NCBI GenBank assembly: GCA_001179505.1
Contig: CDMY01000880.1
Coordinates: 1-13,370, forward strand
DNA: 13,370 bases
Reading direction: 5' to 3'
From: Vitrella brassicaformis CCMP3155
Taxonomy: Eukaryota > Protista > Chromerida
The first letter of the stretch is position 1; every line of letters starts with the position of its first letter. The position numbers were made by a program, and so were the translations under genes. The notes beneath the pieces are model-generated. The model was not told where the DNA came from, searched no databases, and saw only the letters and a program-made list of their open reading frames with translations. This document shows, one piece after another, positions 1-13,370 of the stretch.

Positions 1-1170
1 GCGATCGCGACGAGGAGCGGCGGGAGAGGCGGCAGCATCGCGAGCGCGAGAAGGAGGAGACGGCCAGGGGCACTGCCACCACCCCCACACCCCCGTCCAC
101 GCAGCCAACGGCCGCTGACGAGAGGTCCACGTCACCAGCAGCTGCAGCAGCGGCAGCGGGGGGTGGTGCAGGGGAGGGGACGAGCCCTCAGCCTGCGTCA
201 GCGGCCCCTGCTGATGAGGACCGGGTAAGGCAAAGAGGCCGGCAGGTGGTGAGGTGGATTCTTCATTCCTTCTCTGCTGGCTCATGTGGGCGGTTTTTGG
301 TCGTCATCTCAGGAGGTGCCGCTGGTGGAGGGAGCAGTCAGTGTGGGAGGTGACAACACAGTTGCACCAATCAAGCCGGTCGTCGCGCACGGCGAGGAGT
401 CGTCGGTGGCTGGCGACAGAGATGGCCGCAACGCGTGGGCGGACGTGAGCGACGACGAGGACGTCCTGCCGCACCCCCACCAGCACCGCGGCGAGAGTGG
501 AACCCCGCAAAGGCGTGACGGTATGTCTGTGGGCGAGTGAATCGATGGAAACAGCCTGGTCGATCCCTCGTGTGTGCGTGTGGCTTGCTTGGTGCATAGG
601 AGAAGGAGGAGGAGGAGCGCGATGGCGAGCGAGAGCTTGACGGTGGCGGCGGAGGTGGGCGTCAGCGTGATCGACCCTCTCGTCCGCCGGGCAGGGACAG
701 ATACAACGAGCATGACGACAGACGTGAGTCGAGTCGAGTCGAGAGAGTGGCACACACACATTCATTCATTCATTCAGACACTCACACGACGACACACAGA
801 CACAGGCACGGCCAGGCGTCACATGACCTGCTGTGTGTGCAGGTCGTGGCGGTGGAGGTGGCGGTCGCGGCCCGCGCCCGTCGCTGGGGCGGGCCAGGTA
901 CTTCGAGAGGGAGAGGTGCCCGCCCGTCCCGGAAACCGTAAGCACTGTGATCCATCCATCCATTCATCCATCCATCCATCCGTCCATCGAGTGGTTCGTG
1001 TGTTGGTTCGTCAGTATAATGGCCCGTATGGCTTGATGCTGCACAACGTACCCTACAAAGCCACCAAACGCGACGTGGAAGACTTCCTCAGACCTTGCAG
1101 AGTCAGACAGACAGCACAGCACAGCCACCCAGACAACCCTCCCTCCCACGCCCACCTTGTCGCCTGTGCA

Positions 1171-1204
<34 letters not shown>

Positions 1205-4200
1205 TGTGTGTGGCTGTGCAGGCAAACCACATAAGGCTCGATGTCGACGCTCGTAACCCTAGCAAGAACATCGGCAGATGTGAGCGACCACGCACACACC
1301 CCCACGCCACGCGCCTCACCGCCTTGTCACATGTCGCGCACACTCAGGTTACGTCCAGTTCGACAACCGTCGCGACTTTGAGTTGGCATGGACACACGAC
1401 GGCCTGGTGGGTGCGGACACACTCACACACAATCTTCAATCACACGCAGGCACACACTGCCTCCATCCATGTGTTTCAGGAGATGTTCGGTCGCGAAATC
1501 CGCATCAGCCTGGCCGACGAGATGAAGGGCGCCATCGGCGGCCGACGCGACGACAGAGACAGGCCTGGATACAGCTTCACACGCAGAAGGCAAGACTGAC
1601 AAGCCCCTCCCCCCCAACACAGACACAGACACAGACACAAACACAGACACGCAGTGCACAGATCTTTATGTGTATGTGTGTGTGTGTGTGCAGCAGCAGG
1701 GAGGATGACTATCATCGTGACTCGGGCTACCATCGCGGCTATGGCGGTGGGGATGGGGATGGCGGTAGGCGCTCGGACAGGGACCGAGACAGAGGTAAGA
1801 TGGACACCCCAGACAGCAAAGTCATCCATCCAGCCATGTGTGGCCACACATGGCTGGATGGGTTGCAATGCAGGCGACATGACCCCAGCGAGCGGCGTCA
1901 GCCACGGCGGGCGGCAGCCCGTGATGGCCGCGCAGGGCCGCGTGATTGAATTCCTCACCTCGTGGGAGCCCTCGCGGTATGACAAGCCGTCGCCGGTGAC
2001 GGTGCGGGTGGTGCGGCGCTCTGGCCTCGTGGTGGGCGAGGTGCACCCGTACTCGATGGAGGCCAAGGTGTGGTGGTACATCGACCTGCATCACAAGGTG
2101 CATGGGCCCTTCAGCAGCCAGCAGATGCACGAGTGGGACAAGGCATACACGTTCTTCGACGACGCCCACGTCCTCTTCAGCCTGTGGTGCGACCTCGCGC
2201 AGCACCCGCAGCCCTGCCCGCCACACCAGCAGCCCCTCTTCGCCCACGGATTATACCCCAAGTACAGCTTTTTCGCCGAGAACGACCCCCGCGGGCCGGC
2301 ATTCACCTTCCCCGTCTCCACCATCCCCCTGGGCATCGTCACGACCCTTTCGGGCCCAGGGTGCCTCCACATAGTCCCCCAGCGTGGGCTTCCAGCACGG
2401 CCAGGGGGCGGCGGGAGGAGGGGTTGGGCCTCCCGCACAGGGCGGCATGGGGCACCATCACGTCGACGACCACGGCAACGGACCCTACAACGCCGCCAGT
2501 GCTGCGATCGAGGCCGGGAGCGACCGACAGCTGTCGCAGCCGATGGAGCCTTTGGCTCGGGAGGTCTCGCTGCCGTCTGCAGCATCCCCCCCTCAGCCGA
2601 CGGCCACTGATGAAGATGGTGTTGGGAGTGTGAAGCCAGCTGCCCCCGACGGCAGCCAAAAGGACGGGGGCATCGGTGTTGGTGCTGTGGTCGAGCACAA
2701 TCAGGAGTCGCCTGTGGTGGACGGCGAGGTTATGGAGACCGTGCCGACCGAGACACAGCAGGAAAGAGTCGAGGAGACTGTGCAGCCCCCACCCGTGGAG
2801 CCTGCCAAAGTCGAGGAGGGAGAGGTGGCCGAGCCCGCAGCGCCACAGGAGGAGGAGGCGCCTGCTGAGGGGCAGAAAGAGGCTGAGCCGGTCGAGACAC
2901 ACGCCGAGCCGGCCCCTGTGGCTGAGAAAGAGGCTGCCCCTGTTGAGGAAGCCAAGGGAAAGGCGGCCAAGGAAGACACGGCCAGTGTAAGCGACACACC
3001 ACAACACACTGCATTGTCTTGCCGATGAGTGTCACGGTGGTCTGTCCGTCTATCTCCCTCTGTTGTGTTCGTCAGTCATCCCGTCCCCAGGAGGCCTCTC
3101 GCGTCCCATCCTGCACCCCCGGGCAGCCAACCAGGTATGGCCCGCCCGCACTTGTGTCCCGCTGACTGCAACCACTGAATGCCTTTCTGTCCGTGTCTGT
3201 CTGTCTGTGTGCAGTGTGATAACGTCCCGCCGTGTGCTCAAGGGCAGCGACCTGCGGAGCGATCGCGACGAGGAGCGGCGGGAGAGGCGGCAGCATCGCG
3301 AGCGCGAGAAGGAGGAGACGGCCAGGGGCACTGCCACCACCCCCACACCCCCGTCCACGCAGCCNNNNNNNNNNNNNNNNNNNNNNNNNNNNNNNNNNNN
3401 NNNNNNNNNNNNNNNNNNNNNNNNNNNNNNNNNNNNNNNNNNNNNNNNNNNNNNNNNNNNNNNNNNNNNNNNNNNNNNNNNNNNNNNNNNNNNNNNNNNN
3501 NNNNNNNNNNNNNNNNNNNNNNNNNNNNNNNNNNNNNNNNNNNNNNNNNNNNNNNNNNNNNNNNNNNNNNNNNNNNNNNNNNNNNNNNNNNNNNNNNNNN
3601 NNNNNNNNNNNNNNNNNNNNNNNNNNNNNNNNNNNNNNNNNNNNNNNNNNNNNNNNNNNNNNNNCTGCTTTTGTGTGTGCTTCCAGCGCCCCCCCTGCGG
3701 CCGTTGGAGAGTTCGCTTGCATGACAGAGCCTGTCGTTGAAGCTGCCGAGGTTGTCCAGAAGGCCAAGAAGGAGAACAAGAAAGCTGAGGTGCCGCTGGG
3801 GGAGGGAGCAGTCGGTGCGGGAGGGGAGGCAAAGAAGGAGATGCCCGTCGAGGAAGAGGTTGGTGCATCCACCCCTAGAACAATAGCGCTCACCCATCTC
3901 GATGTCACTGTGTCCTTGCTCTGTCACATACGGTTGCGTGCAGGCCCCTCAAGCCCAAGAGCCTGACGGCACACCAGTCGGCCCACATGTCGAGGATACG
4001 TCGCCCGAGCACCGCCACTCACCGACGAAGACCAAGGAGGAGGAAGCTGTCGCTGGTCAGGAGGCCCCTGTGCCTATGGGTCAGGCTGAGGCCGCGCCAG
4101 CCGGGCGCGAGACACCGGCGGGCAAGACAAAGGTGGACAGGGAGGAGGCGGTGATGGAGCCGGTCAGGGAGGAGCCCTTGGTGCCTGCCAAGCAGGACAC

Positions 4201-7200
4201 CATCGCAGCAGAGTGCAGCGCGCCGCCCGAGACATCTCCATCATCGAGTCCGGTGAGTGCCAAGGAGGCTGAGGAGTGGCCAGCACCAGTGGAGAAGGAG
4301 GGAAAGCCCGTGTCAGAGGAGGTCAAGTCGGACGAGGGCTACGAACCCGACTTCGAAGACCAACAGGAGGGACAAGCAGACAGGTATTGCATCGAACACA
4401 CACATACACCTGCACGCGTTGTGCTGTCATGCCTCGTTTTGTGTGTGCTTCCAGCGCCCCCCCCCTCGGCCGTTGGAGAGTTCGCTGGCAAGACAGAGCC
4501 TGTCGTTGAAGCTGTCAAGGTTGTCCAGGAGGCCAAGAAGGAGAACAAAAAAGCTGAGGTGCCGCTGGGGGAGGGAACAGTCGGTGCGGGAGGGGAGGCA
4601 AAGAAGGAGATGCCCGTCGAGGAAGAGGTTGGTGCATCCACCCCTAGAACAATAGCGCTCACCCATCTCGATGTCACTGTGTCCTTGCTCTGTCACACAC
4701 GGTTGCGTGCAGGCCCCTCAAGCCCAAGAGCCTGACGGCACACCAGTCGGCTGCGACCGACAGCTGTCGCAGCCGATGGAGCCTTTGGCTCGGGAGGTCT
4801 CGCTGCCGTCTGCAGCATCCCCCCCTCAGCCGACGGCCACTGATGAAGATGGTGTTGGGAGTGTGAAGCCAGCTGCCCCCGACGGCAGCCAAAAGGACGG
4901 GGGCATCGGTGTTGGTGCTGTGGTTGAGCACAATCAGGAGTCGCCTGTGGTGGACGGCGAGGTCATGGAGACCGTGCCGACCGAGACACAGCAGGAAAGA
5001 GTCGAGGAGACCGTGCAGCCCCCACCCGTGGAGCCTGCCAAAGTCGAGGAGGGAGAGGTGGCCGAGCCCGCAGCGCCACAGGAGGAGGAGGCGCCTGCTG
5101 AGGGGCAGAAGGAGGCTGAGCCGGTCGAGACACACGCCGAGCCGGCCCCTGTGGCTGAGAAAGAGGCTGCCCCTGTTGAGGAAGCCAAGGGAAAGGCGGC
5201 CAAGGAAGACACGGCCAGTGTAAGCGACACACCACAACACACTGCATTGTCTTGCCGATGAGTGTCACGGTGGTCTGTCCGTCTATCTCCCTCTGTTGTG
5301 TTCGTCAGTCATCCCGTCCCCAGGAGGCCTCTCGCGTCCCATCCCGCACCCCCGGGCAGCCAACCAGGTATGGCCCGCCCGCACTTGTGTCCCGCTGACT
5401 GCAACCACTGAATGCCTTTCTGTCCGTGTCTGTCTGTCTGTGTGCAGTGTGATAACGTCCCGCCGTGTGCTCAAGGGCAGCGACCTGCGGAGCGATCGCG
5501 ACGAGGAGCGGCGGGAGAGGCGGCAGCATCGCGAGCGCGAGAAGGAGGAGACGGCCAGGGGCACTGCCACCACCCCCACACCCCCGTCCACGCAGCCNNN
5601 NNNNNNNNNNNNNNNNNNNNNNNNNNNNNNNNNNNNNNNNNNNNNNNNNNNNNNNNNNNNNNNNNNNNNNNNNNNNNNNNNNNNNNNNNNNNNNNNNNNN
5701 NNNNNNNNNNNNNNNNNNNNNNNNNNNNNNNNNNNNNNNNNNNNNNNNNNNNNNNNNNNNNNNNNNNNNNNNNNNNNNNNNNNNNNNNNNNNNNNNNNNN
5801 NNNNNNNNNNNNNNNNNNNNNNNNNNNNNNNNNNNNNNNNNNNNNNNNNNNNNNNNNNNNNNNNNNNNNNNNNNNNNNNNNNNNNNNNNNNNNNNNNACA
5901 GAGATGGCCGCAACGCGTGGGCGGACGTGAGCGACGACGAGGACGTCCTGCCGCACCCCCACCAGCACCGCGGCGAGAGTGGAACCCCGCAAAGGCGTGA
6001 CGGTATGTCTGTGGGCGAGTGAATCGATGGAAACAGCCTGGTCGATCCCTCGTGTGTGCGTGTGGCTTGCTTGGTGCATAGGAGAAGGAGGAGGAGGAGC
6101 GCGATGGCGAGCGAGAGCTTGACGGTGGCGGCGGAGGTGGGCGTCAGCGTGATCGACCCTCTCGTCCGCCGGGCAGGGACAGATACGACGAGCATGACGA
6201 CAGACGTGAGTCGAGTCGAGTCGAGAGAGTGGCACACACACATTCATTCATTCATTCAGACACGCACACGACGACACACAGACACAGACACGGCCAGGCG
6301 TCACATGACCTGCTGTGTGTGCAGGTCGTGGCGGTGGAGGTGGCGGTCGCGGCCCGCGCCCGTCGCTGGGGCGGGCCAGGTACTTCGAGAGGAAGAGGTG
6401 CCCGCCCGTCCCGGAAACCGTAAGCACTGTGATCCATCCATCCATTCATCCATCCATCCGTCCATCGAGTGGTTCGTGTGTTGGTTGGTCAGTATAATGG
6501 CCCGTATGGCCTTATCCTCGACAACATCCACTACGAGGCCACCAAACGCGACGTGGAAGTCTTCCTTACACCTTGCAGAGTCAGACAGACAGCACAGCAC
6601 AGCCACCCATACAGCCCTCCCTCCCACGCCCACCCTGTCTGTGCATCTCTCTCTCTCTGTGTGTGTATGTGTGTGTGTCTGCCGTGTGTGCGTGTGTGGC
6701 TGTGCAGGTGGACCACATGATGTTGGAAGCCGACCATCGCAACCCTGTCAAGAACCTCGGCAGATGTGAGCGACCACACACATGCACACACCCCCAGGCG
6801 CCTCACCGCCTTATCACATGTCGCGCACACTCAGGTTACGTCCAGTTCGACAACCGTCGCGACTTTGAGTTGGCATGGACATACGAAGGCCTGGTGGGTG
6901 CGGACACACTCACACACATTCTTCAATCACACGCAGGCACACACTGCCTCCCTCCATGTGTTTCAGATGATGCTGGGTCGGAGAATCCGCATCAGCACCG
7001 CCGACGAGATGAAATACGCCGTCGGCGGCCGACTGGACCCAGCAGCCGCAATCCGCTGCAACGACAACAACACTACCACCAGCAGCACCACGAGATGCCG
7101 AGGGCGGGCCAACGGGGCCTTGTTGCAGAGGACGCCCAATGGCAGAGGAGGGAGAGGGGGGCGCGGCCGAGGTCAGAAATACATACACAAACCAGATAGA

Positions 7201-7291
7201 TGACAACCAAAACACCAGCTTAACCGCATTGCATTGCTTGCTGTGTGTGTTTGCCGTTGCTGTGTGTGCAGCCTGGCCGGGAAGAGAGTAA
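1..7291 (+). CDS. Multi-exon RNA-binding protein, 5'-partial, with 2 eIF4B/4H-like RRMs, a DRYG-like tract, a GYF domain, acidic Pro/Ala-rich repeats and an RGG-like C-terminus; spans two assembly gaps
   Basis: Inferred exons: <1-224, 313-(444, 520 or 528), 600-654, 843-937, 1015-1101, 1222-1279, 1348-1406, 1480-1589, 1694-1794, 1874-2986 (frame break near 2375), 3076-3134, 3215-3364>gap, 3687-3858, 3944-4383, 4455-4627, 4713-5219, 5309-5367, 5448-5597>gap, <5898-(5926, 6002 or 6010), 6082-6136, 6325-6419, 6493-6579, 6708-6765, 6835-6893, 6967-7171, 7272-7291 (…AWPGRE-TAA). Phases are consistent except at the junctions listed under findings. Whether this is one gene across both gaps or tandem paralogs cannot be proven from this window. 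Confidence 0.75.
1015..1546 (+). other. RRM copy 1 (eIF4B/eIF4H-like), split over 4 exons
   Basis: Spliced peptide YNGPYGLMLHNVPYKATKRDVEDFLRPCRANHIRLDVDARNPSKNIGRCYVQFDNRRDFELAWTHDGLEMFGREIRISLADE. It has RNP2-like LMLHNV and RNP1-like GRCYVQF, and resembles my recollection of the eIF4B RRM (PYTAFLGNLPYDVT…NPERLKGFGYAEF…LGNRRIRVDVAD). Confidence 0.85.
1590..1693 (+). other. Non-canonical GC-AG intron
   Basis: Donor AG|GCAAGA in phase 2 joins the acceptor TGCAG|C in phase 2. I found no suitable GT donor before the in-frame stop at 1597-1599. Confidence 0.65.
1826..1861. repeat. Perfect 36-bp palindrome inside intron 1795-1873
   Basis: CCATCCAGCCATGTGTGG|CCACACATGGCTGGATGG is an exact reverse complement with no spacer. 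Confidence 0.97.
2068..2181 (+). other. GYF domain
   Basis: VWWYIDLHHKVHGPFSSQQMHEWDKAYTFFDDAHVLFS matches the GYF signature W-x-Y-x-D…GPF…M-x-x-W…(G)YF, with a degenerate final GYF motif. Confidence 0.8.
3365..3664. other. Assembly gap (300 N)
   Basis: Run of exactly 300 N. Confidence 1.
3669..4751 (+). repeat. Direct repeat 3669-3982 / 4437-4751 (K/E-rich exon, intron and next exon start)
   Basis: Offset 768-769 bp with a few percent divergence. Encodes AVGEFA(C/G)(M/K)TEPVVEA…KKENKKAEVPLGEG…KKEMPVEEE. Confidence 0.93.
5598..5897. other. Assembly gap (300 N)
   Basis: Run of exactly 300 N. Confidence 1.
6493..7033 (+). other. RRM copy 2 (diverged paralog of copy 1)
   Basis: Spliced peptide YNGPYGLILDNIHYEATKRDVEVFLTPCRVDHMMLEADHRNPVKNLGRCYVQFDNRRDFELAWTYEGLMMLGRRIRISTADE. 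The first three RRM exons have the same lengths as in copy 1 (87, 58, 59 nt) and the intron phases match. Confidence 0.85.
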
Positions 7292-7582
7292 GGGTATTTC
7301 TATGTGTGTTCAGTGGATTGATTTGTCGCGTTGATACCTAATCTTTCTCTTTGTTGCCTAGTCAGTGCCTGGCTCCTTGCCCGCATCGCCCGCCTGTTTT
7401 GCGTGTTTTGCTCACCTACCTTTGCCTGACCCTGACTGTGGCCGTGGCGTGGCTATTTGCTGCATCCTTCCGGTGCCGGCATCCCATCCTCCTTCCTTAC
7501 CTCCTGTTGGCCTGCCTGCCTGGGGGTGTGTGTTATTTGCCGGCCAGTCAGTTACATCGTATCAGTAGAGGGTGAGTGCCAC

Positions 7583-7882
7583 NNNNNNNNNNNNNNNNNN
7601 NNNNNNNNNNNNNNNNNNNNNNNNNNNNNNNNNNNNNNNNNNNNNNNNNNNNNNNNNNNNNNNNNNNNNNNNNNNNNNNNNNNNNNNNNNNNNNNNNNNN
7701 NNNNNNNNNNNNNNNNNNNNNNNNNNNNNNNNNNNNNNNNNNNNNNNNNNNNNNNNNNNNNNNNNNNNNNNNNNNNNNNNNNNNNNNNNNNNNNNNNNNN
7801 NNNNNNNNNNNNNNNNNNNNNNNNNNNNNNNNNNNNNNNNNNNNNNNNNNNNNNNNNNNNNNNNNNNNNNNNNNNNNNNNNN
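7583..7882. other. Assembly gap (300 N)
   Basis: Run of exactly 300 N; both flanks share AGTGCCAC. Confidence 1.
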
Positions 7883-8280
7883 AGTGCCACTATTGATTGA
7901 ATATATATGTTGAAACGAACAAACGGGTCTCTCTGTCTGCCTGTGTGTTTGCGTCTTGGTGGGGGCGTGGCGGGTGTCTGTGTCTGTGTGGCCGGATGGA
8001 TGGAGTGGTGTACTTGAGTGTCTTTGTTGCGCCGCGGGCAGGGCTCCCTCCCTCTCCCTCTACCTCTCTTGCCTACGCCCGCGTCTGTTGAGTGCAATAC
8101 GTGCCAGTCCATTGAGTCCGTGACACAGACAGCCAGACACGCAAACAAACAGACAGACAGACAGAGGGGTGCCGTCCCATTGTAGCTACCCATACAGACA
8201 GACGCCCACACGCCCGTATGCCACACCACGCCACACCATGCACCGAACCAGCCAGGCAGCCGCTCGAGAGGCATTGGGTG

Positions 8281-8520
8281 GATGTCGTCTGTCTGGTGTG
8301 TATGTGTGTGATGTGAATGGTGTGGTGTGTCGTGTTGTGCTGTATTGTATTGTATTGTATTGTGCTGTGCTGCATAGGACGTTCCTTCCTTCATGCGCGC
8401 GTGTGTGAATGGCTGGTTGGCTTGCCTTGCCCTGCCTGTCTGTCTGCGTGGATGGATGGATGGATGCCTGTTTGCTTGTGCCGTTTGCTTGTGATCTGGG
8501 TGTCTGGCTGTCTTGTTGTC
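8281..8520. repeat. Simple-repeat-rich intergenic/3'-UTR tract: (TG)n, (TGTAT)n, (GATG)n, (TGTC)n
   Basis: Visible in the sequence; lies between the convergent 3' ends of gene 1 and the Tim17-family gene. Confidence 0.85.
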
Positions 8521-8906
8521 TTGCTAGTATTTCTCGACTTCTTTGCTTTGATTGGATGTGTCTGACTAACGTTTCTGGACATGTCAACAATAATGTTTCG
8601 GCCGCCTGATAAGTATGATTCGCGTTGAGGTCAACGAAGACAATGTTGCATTGCCAACCACACACAGGAAATATGGGCAGCAAATCATAGTCATGGTCAG
8701 CGGAACACCACGTGTAGACGCATCCATGTCCCTACCGACGATACTGTACACACACATCCTGCCTGCCTGCCTGCCTGTCTGCCTGTCTGCCTGCCTGTCG
8801 ATGGATCGATCTTTCTGCATGCATCTCGGCTCCATCGTCGGACCACGCCGCATTCTGTAAGTGCCCCCGACCGACAGCAGCAGACGGCCGGCGGATTTGT
8901 CTGTCG

Positions 8907-9752
8907 TCATGCTGGATCTCTCCACAAGTTGGTGGACTTCTTGTCCGTGTCGACGCCGTGCACCACTATGCTGCTCACCACGTTCACACATCACATAGAC
9001 ACAGACACAGGTGTCAAGCCGCTGGTTTGCCTTGTGTGGTGGATCGCTTCTCTCACCTGAACGCAGCGCTGCCGAGGACGGCCGTGGCGAAAAAGTTGGC
9101 CGACTCACGACCAACTACCGAACTGCACACACACACACACAAACACACCGGACTACACACCAGACAACCCCACTTGGAGACCATTCGTCTGTGTGTGAGT
9201 GTGTGTGTGGGGGTTTTCTCCCTCACACGAGTGCGCCGGCCACAGCCCCTCCAGTGCCGGCGTCCAGCGGGTAGGGCACCCCGATGCGCCGCAGAGCACA
9301 TGACATGAACGACGTCACAACTGAGCCAACGCACACAACCGTCCATCAAACACACAGACAATCCGACAATAAAGCAGCCTGTCTTGTCTGCAGTGCGTCT
9401 GTGTGTGTTTGGCTGTTGGATGGACAGATGACTTACAGCACCAAGATCCGAAGTACAGGGCGGTCTTGCCCGTCAGCAGACTCCGACGGCCAATCCACCG
9501 CACGCCGCGCAACACTGACGAGTGTGGGTGGATCTTGCCCGAAGAGGGCGGCCGAGATGATGACACGCCTGCACTCGGCTGCTGATGAGTGGGAGTGGCA
9601 TTGCTGCTGCTGCTGCCAGGTTTGCGCTTGGGTGTGTGGAGTTCTTTGGCGAATAGAATGCCGAAGACTGTGCCCGATACGATGCCGCGGAAGAAGGACT
9701 CGACGCTGCCGTCCAGACAGGCCACCTCGGGCGGCACCACCACCAGCGACAT
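8907..9752 (-). CDS. Tim17/Tim22/Tim23 (PRAT) family membrane translocase subunit, 179 aa
   Basis: Exons 9752-9437, 9320-9227, 9122-9057 and 8970-8907 total 540 nt. All introns are GT-AG and phase-consistent. Protein: MSLVVVPPEVACLDGSVESFFRGIVSGTVFGILFAKE…TGKTALYFGSWCFVTSFMSCALRRIGVPYPLDAGTGGAVAGALVSVVGRESANFFATAVLGSAAFSIVVHGVDTDKKSTNLWRDPA*. It has four Gly-rich (GxxxG-type) hydrophobic segments in the family arrangement. Subfamily is not determined. Confidence 0.75.
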
Positions 9753-9995
9753 CGATTCTATGGATAGACGATGAAATGAGAGGAGGAGATGAGATCTCAA
9801 CTCACTGCCAACTTCTCACTGCCCGCTGAAGGACGGACAATGTCATGTTGATGATCTCTTCTCAGGTCACTCTTCGTGTCTACACCTCCCCAGGGATTTG
9901 AGCTCGCGGGCAGACTTGCAGATCTGACTCATCTCAGTGCCGCGTGACACCGAGGGCCATGGCCTGAGCGCATTAAGCAATCGTCTGTTGAAGTC
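9753..9995. promoter_or_regulatory. Putative compact bidirectional promoter between the divergent Tim17-family and GAA1 start codons (second copy 10767-11024)
   Basis: 243 bp (258 bp in the second copy) between head-to-head ATGs. CTCA(C/G)TGCC occurs three times (9801, 9815, 9933). Promoter function is inferred from gene arrangement only. Confidence 0.55.
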
Positions 9996-10376
9996 ATGGG
10001 TGTTGTCCGCGACGGCGTGGCGACCTTCTTGGCGCCCCGTCTGCGGCAGATCTCCCTCCTGGTGGCCCTCGCAGGCGCCATCTGGCTCAGCATGTTCGAC
10101 GCATTCGACAGACCAACAGTCATCGAAGAGCACGGCCTCGTCCCGGGCTATGCACAGCACGGCTTCAGCACATCACACAGCAGCCAGCAGCTGGGCGCCA
10201 TGAGGCAAGAGCTAAGAGAAGCGACGGCTGACGGATCATCTTCAAGGTCATCGTCTCATGCTGCTGCTACTGGTGCTGGTGGTGGTGGTGGTGGTGGTGT
10301 GGCGGGGCACCTGCAGTCGGCCCTTGAGCAGTCGGGCCTGCCTGCCTACAACATCAGCTGGAGCTGCTTCGATGGG
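9996..10376 (+). CDS. GPAA1: Second copy of the GAA1 5' end, cut off by an assembly gap (alternative haplotype or paralog)
   Basis: Open reading frame nearly identical to 11025-11390. It differs by substitutions and in-frame indels only (extra Ala; Gly7 vs Gly3) and runs into the Ns at 10377. Confidence 0.7.
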
Positions 10377-10676
10377 NNNNNNNNNNNNNNNNNNNNNNNN
10401 NNNNNNNNNNNNNNNNNNNNNNNNNNNNNNNNNNNNNNNNNNNNNNNNNNNNNNNNNNNNNNNNNNNNNNNNNNNNNNNNNNNNNNNNNNNNNNNNNNNN
10501 NNNNNNNNNNNNNNNNNNNNNNNNNNNNNNNNNNNNNNNNNNNNNNNNNNNNNNNNNNNNNNNNNNNNNNNNNNNNNNNNNNNNNNNNNNNNNNNNNNNN
10601 NNNNNNNNNNNNNNNNNNNNNNNNNNNNNNNNNNNNNNNNNNNNNNNNNNNNNNNNNNNNNNNNNNNNNNNNNNNN
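10377..10676. other. Assembly gap (300 N)
   Basis: Run of exactly 300 N. Confidence 1.
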
Positions 10677-10766
10677 GAAGACTGTGCCCGATACGATGCC
10701 GCGGAAGAAGGACTCGACGCTGCCGTCCAGACAGGCCACCTCGGGCGGCACCACCACCAGCGACAT
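10677..10766 (-). other. Duplicate of the first 30 codons of the Tim17-family gene, truncated by a gap
   Basis: Identical to 9663-9752 (MSLVVVPPEVACLDGSVESFFRGIVSGTVF). Confidence 0.8.
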
Positions 10767-11024
10767 CGATTCTATGGATAGACGATGAAATGAGAGGAGG
10801 AGATGAGATCTCAACTCACTGCCAACTTCTCACTGCCCGCTGAAGGACGGACAATGTCATGTTGATGATCTTGATGATCTCTCAGGTCATTCTTCGTATC
10901 CAAACCTCCCCAGGGATTTAAGCTCGCGGTGGAAAGGGGCAGACTTGAAGATCTGACTCATCTCACTGCCGCGTGACACCGAGGACGATGGCCTCAGCGC
11001 ATTAAGCAATCGTCTGTTGAAGTC

Positions 11025-13370
11025 ATGGGTGTTGTCCGCGACGGCGTGGCCTCCTTCTTAGCGCCCCGTTTGCGGCAGATCTCCCTCCTGGTGGCCCTCG
11101 CAGGCGCCATCTGGCTCAGCATGTTCGACGCATTCGACAGACCAACAGTCATCGAAGAGCACGGCCTCGTCCCGGGCTATGCACAGCACGGCTTCAGCAC
11201 ATCACACAGCAGCCAGCAGCTGGGCGCCACGAGGCAAGAGCTGAGAGAAGCGACGGCTGACGTATCATCTAGAAGGTCATCGTCTCATGCTGCTACTGGT
11301 GCTGGTGGTGGTGTGGCGGGGCACCTGCAGTCGGCCCTTGAGCGGTCGGGGCTGCCAGCCTACAACATCAGCTGGAGCTACTTCGATGGGGAGGTGCGGG
11401 GCACGACAGTTGTGGCGGTGGTGCCGTCTGCTCGTGGCGACTCGAGGGAGAGCATCGTGCTCGTCATGGCCTCGGACTGGCGCGACAGGGACGACACGGC
11501 CACTCCCGCAGTGGGGCTCGCACTGGCGGACTACCTGCAGACGGTTCAGTGGCTTGCGCGTGACGTCATTGTGATCTTCACCGACCGGACGCTGCCGTAC
11601 GCCGCAGGTCAGACACACACAGACAGGCAGACGGCTGTGAATGGATGGATGTGTGTGGTTTGTCTGCAGGGGTCCGTGCGTTCCTTGACGGCTATTTGCG
11701 TGACAAGGCGCCCTTTCCCCGCAGGGGCCTCATGCGCCAGGCCGTCATATTCGAGATCGACAAGGACCGCCCCAACCAAGTCGCCGTGACACTGGACATC
11801 GGTACGCACAGCATTTGCAACTAAATGGGTCTTGCGTATGTGTGTCTGTGTGCAGAGGGTGTGAACGGTCTGCAGCCGAACCAGGACCTGGTCAACGCCT
11901 ATGCGATAGAGGCCAAGCAGGACGGCATTAGAGCGGAGCCCAGAGAGGCCTGGGATTCCGTCAACCGAATGGCCACCGATGCCGGGGCCGACCGAATCCA
12001 CTCGGCCTTCCTGCAGTAAGTCCATCATGCACACAATCATAAGGCAATGAAGTGTTCGCTTCCTGCCCTTGTTGCCGTCAGGCGTGCCATCCCTGCGTTG
12101 ACCGCAGTGGCCTCGTCTAACCCGCGGGGCGGCAACGGCCAGCCCAAACTGACTCAGCTGGGCGGGTAAGGTCCATGTGTACTGATCCCCTTCCCTCTCT
12201 CTGAGTATGCTGTGTGTGTCTTATGTGTGCATGCAGCTCGTTGGAGGGCATCTTGCGTTGCCAGAGCAGCGCTCTGCAGGCGCTGCACCATTCCTTCAAC
12301 TTCTACTTCTTCACCAGACCCAACAGCCACGTGTCGTCCGGCCTCTACCTCTACCCCGTGTTCGGCATGCTCATGCCGCTCGCCGCAGCGGTCAGCCAAT
12401 GGATGGATGGATGGATGGATTTGTCTGTCTTGGCTGGTGCTGGTTTGGTCGTCAGACGTTTCAGTGTCGGGTGTTTAGTGACGTGGGAGCTGTGATGCTT
12501 GGCGCGACCGTCATGCTCTCGGGCGTCATCGCAGGCAGCCTCACGTCTTTCGCACTGGCCACACAGGTGAGATCGGTCACACACAGCCAGAAAGCGGGGA
12601 ACTTTGGTTTGCATGCTGGCCCTTGTCTCTTCTTCAGAGTGGTCTTGTGGACCAGCTGTCATCTTGGGGCATTGGGGGTCTGCTCCCATCAGCATCCTCC
12701 CTCCTTCGCTGGAGGCATGCAGGCCTCCTCACCCCGTCATGCACACCAGCAGCTGCACACGACAAGCGCCAAGTGCGGACGGCCAGAAAGGTCAGCACAT
12801 CGAGAGGCTGCACTCCACGGCACCGCACCACTCACCGTGTGCTGTGCTGTGCTGTGTGTTGCAGAAGGCGTCTGTGTGGGTGTGGGTGGCGCTGATGGGC
12901 TACGCCGCCGTCGGTCTCATCTGTTTGGTCAGTGAGGCGCTCATTCGACAGCCACGATCATCACGCCAGCCAGCCAAAGGCGACAGCGTGGCAAAGGGGA
13001 ACGAAGCGACGGGTGAAGGGGAGCCGAGCATCCGTGAGATGCCGCCGCTGTGGATGTGCGTCAAGAGTGTGGCGAGGGCGATGGCCATTCTCACATTGGC
13101 ACCACTCACGGTGAGCGAGCCAAGCCGAATCCATCCATCCATCCATTGATTTGGTGTCGACCCCCTTCCCTTTTGTTTAGGTGTACAACTGGGCTGCGTC
13201 AGTGTACTTGACGCCATTAGTGGTGCCGCCGCTCCTGCTGGTGGAGCCTCTTACCTCACTCATCGATGCGCCACAGCAGCCGACGACCGCCCAATCGCCC
13301 CCGCAGCACAGCGGCAGATGGCGGTGGAAATGGCGGCCTCGGCTGCGACGAAGCCATCTGTTCGTCCTGC
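11025..13370 (+). CDS. GPAA1: GPI-anchor transamidase subunit GAA1/GPAA1, 3'-partial
   Basis: Exons 11025-11607, 11670-11801, 11856-12015, 12082-12165, 12237-12390, 12456-12566, 12638-12790, 12865-13110 and 13181->13370 are all GT-AG and phase-consistent. Gaa1 motifs follow an N-terminal TM segment: EEHGLVPG, ARGDSRESIVL, VGLALADYLQTVQWLARDVIVIFTD, LDIEGVNGLQPNQDLVN, HSAFLQRAIPALT, SLEGILRCQSSALQALHHSFNFYF…VSSGLY, then multiple C-terminal TM segments. Confidence 0.92.

Follow-up and report, generated by a model that had tools for sequence, protein, structure and literature searches.

Two RNA recognition motifs on one scaffold

The window analysed here is the whole of scaffold CDMY01000880.1 (C880; 13,370 nucleotides, about 13 kb) of the chromerid alga Vitrella brassicaformis CCMP3155, and the element in question is a gene segment that occurs on it twice, each time encoding an RNA recognition motif (RRM) divided over four small exons (E1 to E4). 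Chromerids are free-living relatives of the apicomplexan parasites. The RRM of copy 1 lies at 1015-1546 and that of copy 2 at 6493-7033, and we compared the two by global alignment of 416-1546 with 5898-7033, which takes in the block upstream of each (Table 1). Our search for further family members covered the CCMP3155 assembly, published as 72,700,666 bases in 1064 scaffolds (PMC4501334), and brought the number of RRM copies to five, two in the window and three elsewhere. They fall into two types: type A comprises copy 1 and a copy on scaffold C98 (C98:164124-164693), and type B comprises copy 2 and the copies on C613 (C613:6217-6928) and C176 (C176:14193-14776). A word search for relatives outside Vitrella returned Vitrella proteins only and so gave no outgroup.

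By sequence similarity, both copies are RRMs of the eIF4B/eIF4H type. For the domain searches we used the public gene models P0003 (this scaffold) and P0001 (C613), which a search with the upstream exon had brought up. P0003, of 1431 amino acids, combines both RRMs, a GYF domain and Glu/Pro-rich repeats in one protein and bridges assembly gaps. Its single match to Pfam RRM_1 (PF00076) is the RRM of copy 1, including E1, at amino acids 183-251 (28.5 bits against a cut-off of 20.7, E-value 1.5e-6); copy 2 fails the cut-off. The type B model P0001, which is 94% identical to copy 2 across the RRM region, covers profile positions 4-70 of 70 and reaches 13.6 bits against the same 20.7 (E-value 0.064). 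By these scores, type B is the more degenerate of the two types. The best PDB matches of type A are 2dng (2.9e-5), 2j76 (3.1e-5) and 1wi8 (7.1e-5), all eIF4B/eIF4H RRMs, followed by nucleolin (7e-3), and P0001 matches the same three structures (4.6e-5, 1.3e-3 and 2.6e-3, respectively). Searched singly, the RRM exons gave no Pfam match, being too short, and in the PDB nothing was found for E2, E3 or E4 and only eIF4B at an E-value of 0.7 for E1.

The window RRMs are colinear with those of eIF4B/eIF4H over the whole domain, and further likenesses are a WAD motif upstream and a tract rich in Asp, Arg, Tyr and Gly (DRYG-like) after type A. In eIF4B proper, the RRM is followed by a DRYG region and an arginine-rich RNA-binding region at the C-terminus, and foreign domains are absent. 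Unlike eIF4B, however, the predicted window proteins carry a GYF domain after type A, and the C613 model has a MIF4G domain before type B; these models bridge gaps and may fuse neighbouring genes. The RNP1 of the window copies also departs from that of usual RRMs, with Arg and Cys in place of Phe/Tyr and Gly/Ala.

Table 1. Features of the two RRM copies and adjoining sequence in the window (nt, nucleotides; fractions are differing sites between copies 1 and 2)
Feature	Position	Strand	Comparison or basis
Copy 1 upstream block (exons and introns)	416-1014	+	Against 5898-6492: 5 substitutions and one 4-nt indel
Copy 1 (type A) E1, beta1/RNP2 and helix 1, YNGPYGLMLHNVPYKATKRDVEDFLRPCR	1015-1101	+	AG/GT borders, open frame; 13/87
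Copy 1 intron 1, CT/GT microsatellite	1102-1221	+	6/117 and 3 microsatellite indels
Copy 1 E2, beta2 and loop 3	1222-1279	+	15/58, highest divergence of any exon
Copy 1 intron 2	1280-1347	+	2/63 and 2 indels, all at 1292-1310
Copy 1 E3, RNP1/beta3 and helix 2	1348-1406	+	2/59, both non-synonymous
Copy 1 intron 3	1407-1479	+	2/73 (against 6894-6966)
Copy 1 E4, beta4 and start of DRYG-like tract	1480-1589	+	GC donor at 1590; end agrees with P0003
GYF-domain exon downstream of copy 1	1874-2350	+	Pfam GYF, E-value 7e-8 alone; 29.5 bits against 25.7 in P0003
Assembly gap between the copy 1 contig and the next	3365-3664	.	Flanks not colinear with copy 1; join unverified
Assembly gap upstream of copy 2	5598-5897	.	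Left flank equals 1-106, right flank equals copy 1 from 416 onward
Copy 2 upstream block	5898-6492	+	Begins directly after gap 5598-5897; partner of 416-1014
Copy 2 (type B) E1	6493-6579	+	Global alignment; one difference from the C613 copy
Copy 2 E2	6708-6765	+	Same sequence as the C613 and C176 copies
Copy 2 E3	6835-6893	+	Global alignment
Copy 2 E4, fused to Asn/Thr-rich and RGG tail	6967-7171	+	Reading frame and C-terminus of P0003
Copy 2 last exon, TAA stop at 7289-7291	7272-7291	+	Read from sequence; agrees with P0003 end ...AWPGRE

Divergent exons, similar introns and conflicting trees

The RRM exons of copies 1 and 2 differ at 41 of 270 sites and the four introns at 11 of 326 (0.034; Fisher p = 3.2e-7, odds ratio 5.1), and three of the four exons are about 15-26% different. 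A sequence-only reading of the window had already described exons far more diverged than the adjacent introns, and every count that it gave for the upstream block, the exons and intron 3 came out again in the global alignment; only its border of E2 was one base off. The figure for the first 66 nt of E4, 14/66, holds for the codon alignment, a free alignment giving 11/66 and two indels, and the homology of the two copies in this exon stops near 1546. Our recount likewise gave 24 amino-acid changes in 90 codons, with the RNP1 stretch GRCYVQFDNRRDFELAWT constant. Upstream of the RRM, divergence can also be counted as 4 in 522 nt (0.008), the coding exons there differ at only 2 of 324 sites, synonymous ones included, and the longest identical run is 289 nt, a length reached in none of 20,000 permutations.

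The picture of divergence confined to exons nevertheless has to be corrected. Copy 1 is A-like in the blocks 1033-1132, 1205-1310 and from 1480 onward, and these overrun the exon borders by 17-31 nt. The differences in intron 2 all adjoin E2, forming the shoulder of a divergence peak. The mosaic thus follows tracts, not splice sites.

We estimated synonymous (dS) and nonsynonymous (dN) divergence by Nei-Gojobori counts, exon by exon on whole codons, with one split codon excluded. Between copies 1 and 2, dS is 0.24-0.32 and dN 0.17-0.21 (dN/dS 0.67-0.71), and there are 11.8 synonymous differences in 57 sites, where about 2 would be expected at the intron rate (binomial p = 4e-7). This excess indicates that the exons are older than their surroundings and not merely faster at replacement sites. 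Synonymous divergence is about tenfold that of the introns while dN/dS stays near 0.7, and diversifying selection, one of two explanations offered by the sequence-only reading, cannot alone account for the pattern in duplicates that are young. Copy 1 and its type A relative on C98 are further apart at silent sites (dS 0.37-0.42) and closer at replacement sites (dN 0.08-0.11; dN/dS 0.2-0.3). In the young pair of copy 2 and C613, 4 of 270 exon sites and 9 of 327 intron sites differ, and this lack of any exon excess speaks against an exon-directed mutation process. We also considered CpG decay as a cause of quick exon change and rejected it, as by eye only about 2 of the 13 differences in E1 are CpG transitions.

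Neighbouring segments of the same copies support different trees. In a comparison of site patterns among copy 1, copy 2, C613 and C98, all 13 informative sites in 427-937 pair copy 1 with copy 2 and C613 with C98, whereas all 28 in E1, E2 and E4 pair copy 1 with C98 and copy 2 with C613. The switch is sharp and falls between 937 and 1033. In E3, two sites join copy 1 to copy 2 and one joins it to C98, and six sites in introns 1 and 2 show the exon topology.

Partitioning the changes over this tree separates the branches clearly. On the C98 terminal branch the introns change as much as the exons (23/250 and 21/267), from which it follows that the introns are not generally constrained. On the internal branch between types A and B, by contrast, exons differ at 28 of 212 sites and introns at 6 of 250, and on the copy 1 terminal branch the counts are 11/267 and 3/250. 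These intron deficits mean that the introns of copy 1 are too close to type B, given that C98 is its sister. Patchy conversion of copy 1 by B-type neighbours would predict such deficits. For the internal branch, the proportions of synonymous (pS) and nonsynonymous (pN) differences are 0.107 and 0.112, against 0.024 in introns (pS against introns, p = 0.01), and dN/dS is about 1.05.

Probable mosaic concerted evolution and the alternatives

We consider it probable that these direct observations (the exon-intron contrast, the old synonymous divergence of the exons, the sharp change of topology and the ordinary behaviour of the young pair) reflect mosaic concerted evolution. Repeated gene conversion or unequal recombination between paralogues would keep divergence down to about 1-3% in E3, the introns and the upstream exons. 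E1, E2 and E4, corresponding to beta1, beta2 with loop 3, and beta4, would have escaped homogenisation and retained a more ancient divergence of A from B, synonymous sites included. The sequence-only reading had proposed, as its second explanation, that conversion homogenises non-coding DNA while selection preserves two old and functionally distinct RRMs. The tree switch agrees with the conversion part of that proposal, although the homogenised portion is not limited to non-coding sequence, since it includes the upstream exons and E3. As for selection, the islands may hold functionally important differences, in which case converted or chimeric RRMs would be selected against because of distinct function or co-adapted residues. 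Equally possible is a relaxed or adaptive phase of type B, after which the accumulated divergence would now block heteroduplex formation. A dN/dS of about 1 on the A/B branch neither supports nor excludes functional differences kept by selection.

Several points weigh against mosaic concerted evolution. The classical demonstration, that paralogues are closer to each other than to orthologues, would need an orthologue from another species, and the word search found Vitrella proteins only. All our counts derive from 270 sites in exons and some 55 synonymous sites. With dN/dS about 1 on the A/B branch and the type B score below the Pfam threshold, selection for two working RRMs is no more than a possibility. 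The homogenised stretches between the islands are just 72-170 nt long, so either short tracts or many events are needed. The C98 copy lies on a different scaffold, yet outside the RRM exons it differs from the other copies by just 6-10%, against a dS of 0.4-0.5 inside them, so the conversion would have to be ectopic and family-wide. Finally, the perfect identity of 416-704 may partly reflect collapse of repeats in the assembler.

Two rival readings each take a single class of sites as the true measure of age. If the duplication were recent, the introns would show its age, and the exons would have changed quickly because of positive selection or a relaxation of constraint; multi-nucleotide changes in clusters would yield the neighbouring synonymous differences. 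Such acceleration has been proposed for snake-venom phospholipase A2 and three-finger toxin genes, in which paralogues likewise have introns more conserved than coding exons and dN close to dS. In agreement with it, pN on the A/B branch is 4-5 times the intron divergence; the seven purely synonymous codon differences all stand beside a replacement, E3 and the middle of E1 having none; and the changes lie on beta1, beta2, loop 3 and beta4 and leave RNP1 untouched. The products of venom genes, however, are secreted toxins for which strong positive selection is assumed, while here dN/dS does not exceed 1 in the pair or on the branch, small as these samples are, and synonymous divergence is raised as much as replacement divergence. 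Moreover, copy 1, C98 and type B are about equidistant in E1 and E2, the divergence of copy 1 from C98 is old and ordinary, as in sequences under purifying selection, and exchange between copies is directly evidenced. The acceleration would explain neither the topology switch at 937-1033 nor the young pair, and we regard it as unlikely. A slightly less likely reading takes the exons as showing the true age and supposes purifying selection on intron and upstream RNA or DNA, for instance on splicing fold-backs or regulatory elements. The first 75 nt or so of intron 1 and most of intron 3 are indeed nearly invariant in all five copies, C98 included. Intron 1 has in both window copies a perfect 10-bp terminal inverted repeat, GCACAGCCAC/GTGGCTGTGC (1119-1128 and 1210-1219 in copy 1, 6597-6606 and 6696-6705 in copy 2), whose aligned stretches are invariant in all five. 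Against such constraint stand the C98 branch, where introns are not spared, the near-identity of the upstream coding exons even at synonymous sites, and the topology switch, which constraint cannot produce. Predicted folds are also no better than those of shuffled sequence (z -1.5 to +0.3), and Rfam searches of the introns brought up weak, low-complexity resemblances to microRNAs but no family that reached its gathering score; on these two grounds we rejected functional intron RNAs.

On another reading, one of the two copies arose recently from the other and then received E1, E2 and E4 as short, exon-sized conversion tracts from a diverged donor, possibly one outside the assembly. Copy 2 differs from C613 at 1 of 211 sites in these three exons and by 5.4% upstream, where it is only 0.8% from copy 1, and the mixture of A and B states in E4 of C176 shows that exchange takes place within exons. 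We find such imports very unlikely all the same: B-type introns travel with B exons in C613 and copy 2, and the likeness of A and B introns is unexplained either way; the assembly holds no close A-type donor, the nearest, C98, being 10-17% off copy 1 in the exons; and no intron-less RRM copy was found in the genome search. What looks like a spliced junction in the type B tail lacks GT/AG borders and is a simple deletion. Chimeric assembly, which the sequence-only reading had named as a possible undoing of its own observation, is less probable still. Short reads were assembled by Velvet at k = 75, after which SSPACE, GapFiller, IMAGE, iCORN and REAPR were applied, and collapse, chimerism or homogenising base correction could be suspected on several grounds. 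Four 300-N gaps lie within 13 kb, three of them flanked by duplicates (1-106, 3259-3364 and 5492-5597 are the same sequence, as are 9663-9857 and 10677-10871) and the fourth by an 8-nt repeat on both sides. Exact runs of 289, 104 and 76 nt are common to copies 1 and 2 upstream, so that collapse is possible there and could exaggerate the identity. Within 978-1700, however, copy 1 has no exact match longer than 72 nt to any of the other copies, a length below k, which leaves no node of the de Bruijn graph at which paths in the RRM region could be swapped, and at least six swaps would be needed. The introns of copies 1 and 2 are similar, not identical, and comparison with C613 and C176, each on a large scaffold of its own, shows this contrast again.

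Divergence islands among homogenised introns are already known, and the Vitrella RRM family would be a further case. In the long- and middle-wavelength (LW/MW, red/green) opsins of primates, conversion keeps introns nearly identical while an exon forms the peak of divergence, a pattern attributed to conversion with selection (PMC3924837, section 3.2). The window copies resemble these paralogues in their near-identical introns, in the divergence of particular exons and in the disagreement of exon and intron trees: neighbouring segments of the same copies support conflicting topologies, 13:0 upstream and 0:28 in the islands, and silent divergence in the islands exceeds that of flanking non-coding sequence (dS 0.24-0.32, against 0.034 in introns and 0.008 upstream). 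They differ in that the selected residues and spectral tuning of the opsins are known and orthologues prove their concerted evolution, while the window copies are known from sequence alone; in that the opsins are neighbours, while adjacency of the window copies is unproven; and in that here three of four small exons are islands, with short homogenised stretches between, and family members on other scaffolds take part. Islands of divergence amid interlocus conversion are read as targets of selection in the GOT1 paralogues of the copepod Tigriopus californicus (PMC3728101), as is mosaic divergence in the tandem HMA4 copies of Arabidopsis halleri (bioRxiv 10.1101/2025.10.29.685298). The likeness there concerns the mosaic of homogenised and divergent segments; the proteins and organisms are others.

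The family provides a quantifiable case of divergence islands in a chromerid alga, where the dynamics of paralogues are hardly described. The part that has been kept or has become different would be the beta-sheet face of an eIF4B/eIF4H-type RRM, a lead on differing RNA or partner specificity among translation-initiation-like factors. More broadly, overall, intron and exon identity in this genome give differing ages and trees for the same duplicates, and dating or building trees from one class of sites would mislead. The homogenising pattern might even be general in Vitrella, with introns and exons for disordered regions near-identical and exons for folded domains drifting. We think this very doubtful, and nothing in our data requires it. 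It would imply a very high rate of short-tract ectopic conversion across scaffolds or a process aimed at introns, such as repair templated by excised intron RNA; if it were true, the rate and tract length of ectopic conversion would be worth study.

Assembly gaps, other family members and neighbouring sequence

The scaffold has four gaps of exactly 300 N each. The RRM of copy 1 lies within the gap-free contig 1-3364 and that of copy 2 within the gap-free contig 5898-7582, so the exon-intron contrast is independent of any gap. The physical adjacency of the two copies and the order of the contigs do rest on gaps, as 3365-3664 joins stretches that are not colinear, and tandem adjacency of copies 1 and 2 on the scaffold is unproven. 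The gap 5598-5897 is consistent with continuity of the sequence: by the match to copy 1 about 309 nt are missing, against 300 N written, and the paralogous scaffold C613 is unbroken across the matching stretch. The gap 7583-7882 (within 7575-7890) is probably spurious; the same 8 nt, agtgccac, stand on each side, and C613 is continuous there (C613:7303-7310).

The three stretches 1-106, 3259-3364 and 5492-5597 are 100% identical to each other, and other repeats on the scaffold are 96.5-99.4% identical. Rfam matches to mir-343 on the minus strand at 33-103, 3291-3361 and 5524-5594 are below threshold (33.8 bits against a gathering score of 70); they sit in this identical GC-rich repeat and are most likely due to chance. 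Further along, a Gaa1-like gene for a glycosylphosphatidylinositol (GPI) transamidase component (Pfam Gaa1, E-value 9.5e-9) has its upstream region and first exon twice across the gap 10377-10676 (window 9663-11390). The stretches 9663-9857 and 10677-10871 are 100% identical, and 9908-10376 and 10937-11390 agree at 92-97%. Similar contigs seem to have been strung together in tandem on this scaffold.

At least eight scaffolds carry pieces of the RRM family, which, like the other repeats on this scaffold, counts in favour of concerted evolution. Window 5234-9859 has a colinear counterpart in C613:4950-9246, 90-94% identical to it, and because the homology ends inside gap-free contigs on both sides, C613 is a separate segmental duplicate and not an allele. 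C265:2150-6270 (minus strand) has the upstream block, the DRYG-like tract, the SIFGTGKPRDEKE motif and the RGG tail and is devoid of all four RRM exons, and C303 has the upstream block only; a search of these two scaffolds for additional RRM copies found none. C176:13920-14777 (P0004) has no upstream block, carries a partial duplicate of E2, intron 2 and E3 ahead of its RRM and has lost 27 nt over the border of E3 and intron 3; most probably it is decaying, and the public model reads across the damage. We did not treat it as a simple recombinant, as A and B states interleave in its E4 with no single clean breakpoint. The tail of copy 2 matches C98:166855-166941 and 167658-167774, two pieces that are contiguous in type B. 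An origin of this 3' end from spliced cDNA was rejected, since the C98 spacer has no GT/AG at its junctions and the change is thus a deletion.

The GYF-domain exon has paralogues on C551 and C447. The exon that follows the DRYG-like tract (1874-2990) is itself chimeric: up to about 1916 it resembles the eIF4B-like members on C98 and C265, and beyond about 1986 its matches are GYF-domain genes on C551 (83-94% DNA identity) and C447. Its frame breaks near 2350-2384, and P0003 takes that stretch out as an intron. P0001 (C613:1-7000), of 841 amino acids, has an N-terminal MIF4G domain of the eIF4G type (E-value 2e-24; best PDB match eIF4G2) joined to the eIF4B-like RRM. This could be a genuine fusion of two modules resembling initiation factors, or else the predictor ran two genes together. 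An Arg/Asp/Glu-rich exon upstream of the RRM (600-723 and 6082-6205) does not continue the frame of exon 313-520 before it in copy 1, where the model skips it; in copy 2 the model takes up the end of this exon, and in the C613 model the exon is present.

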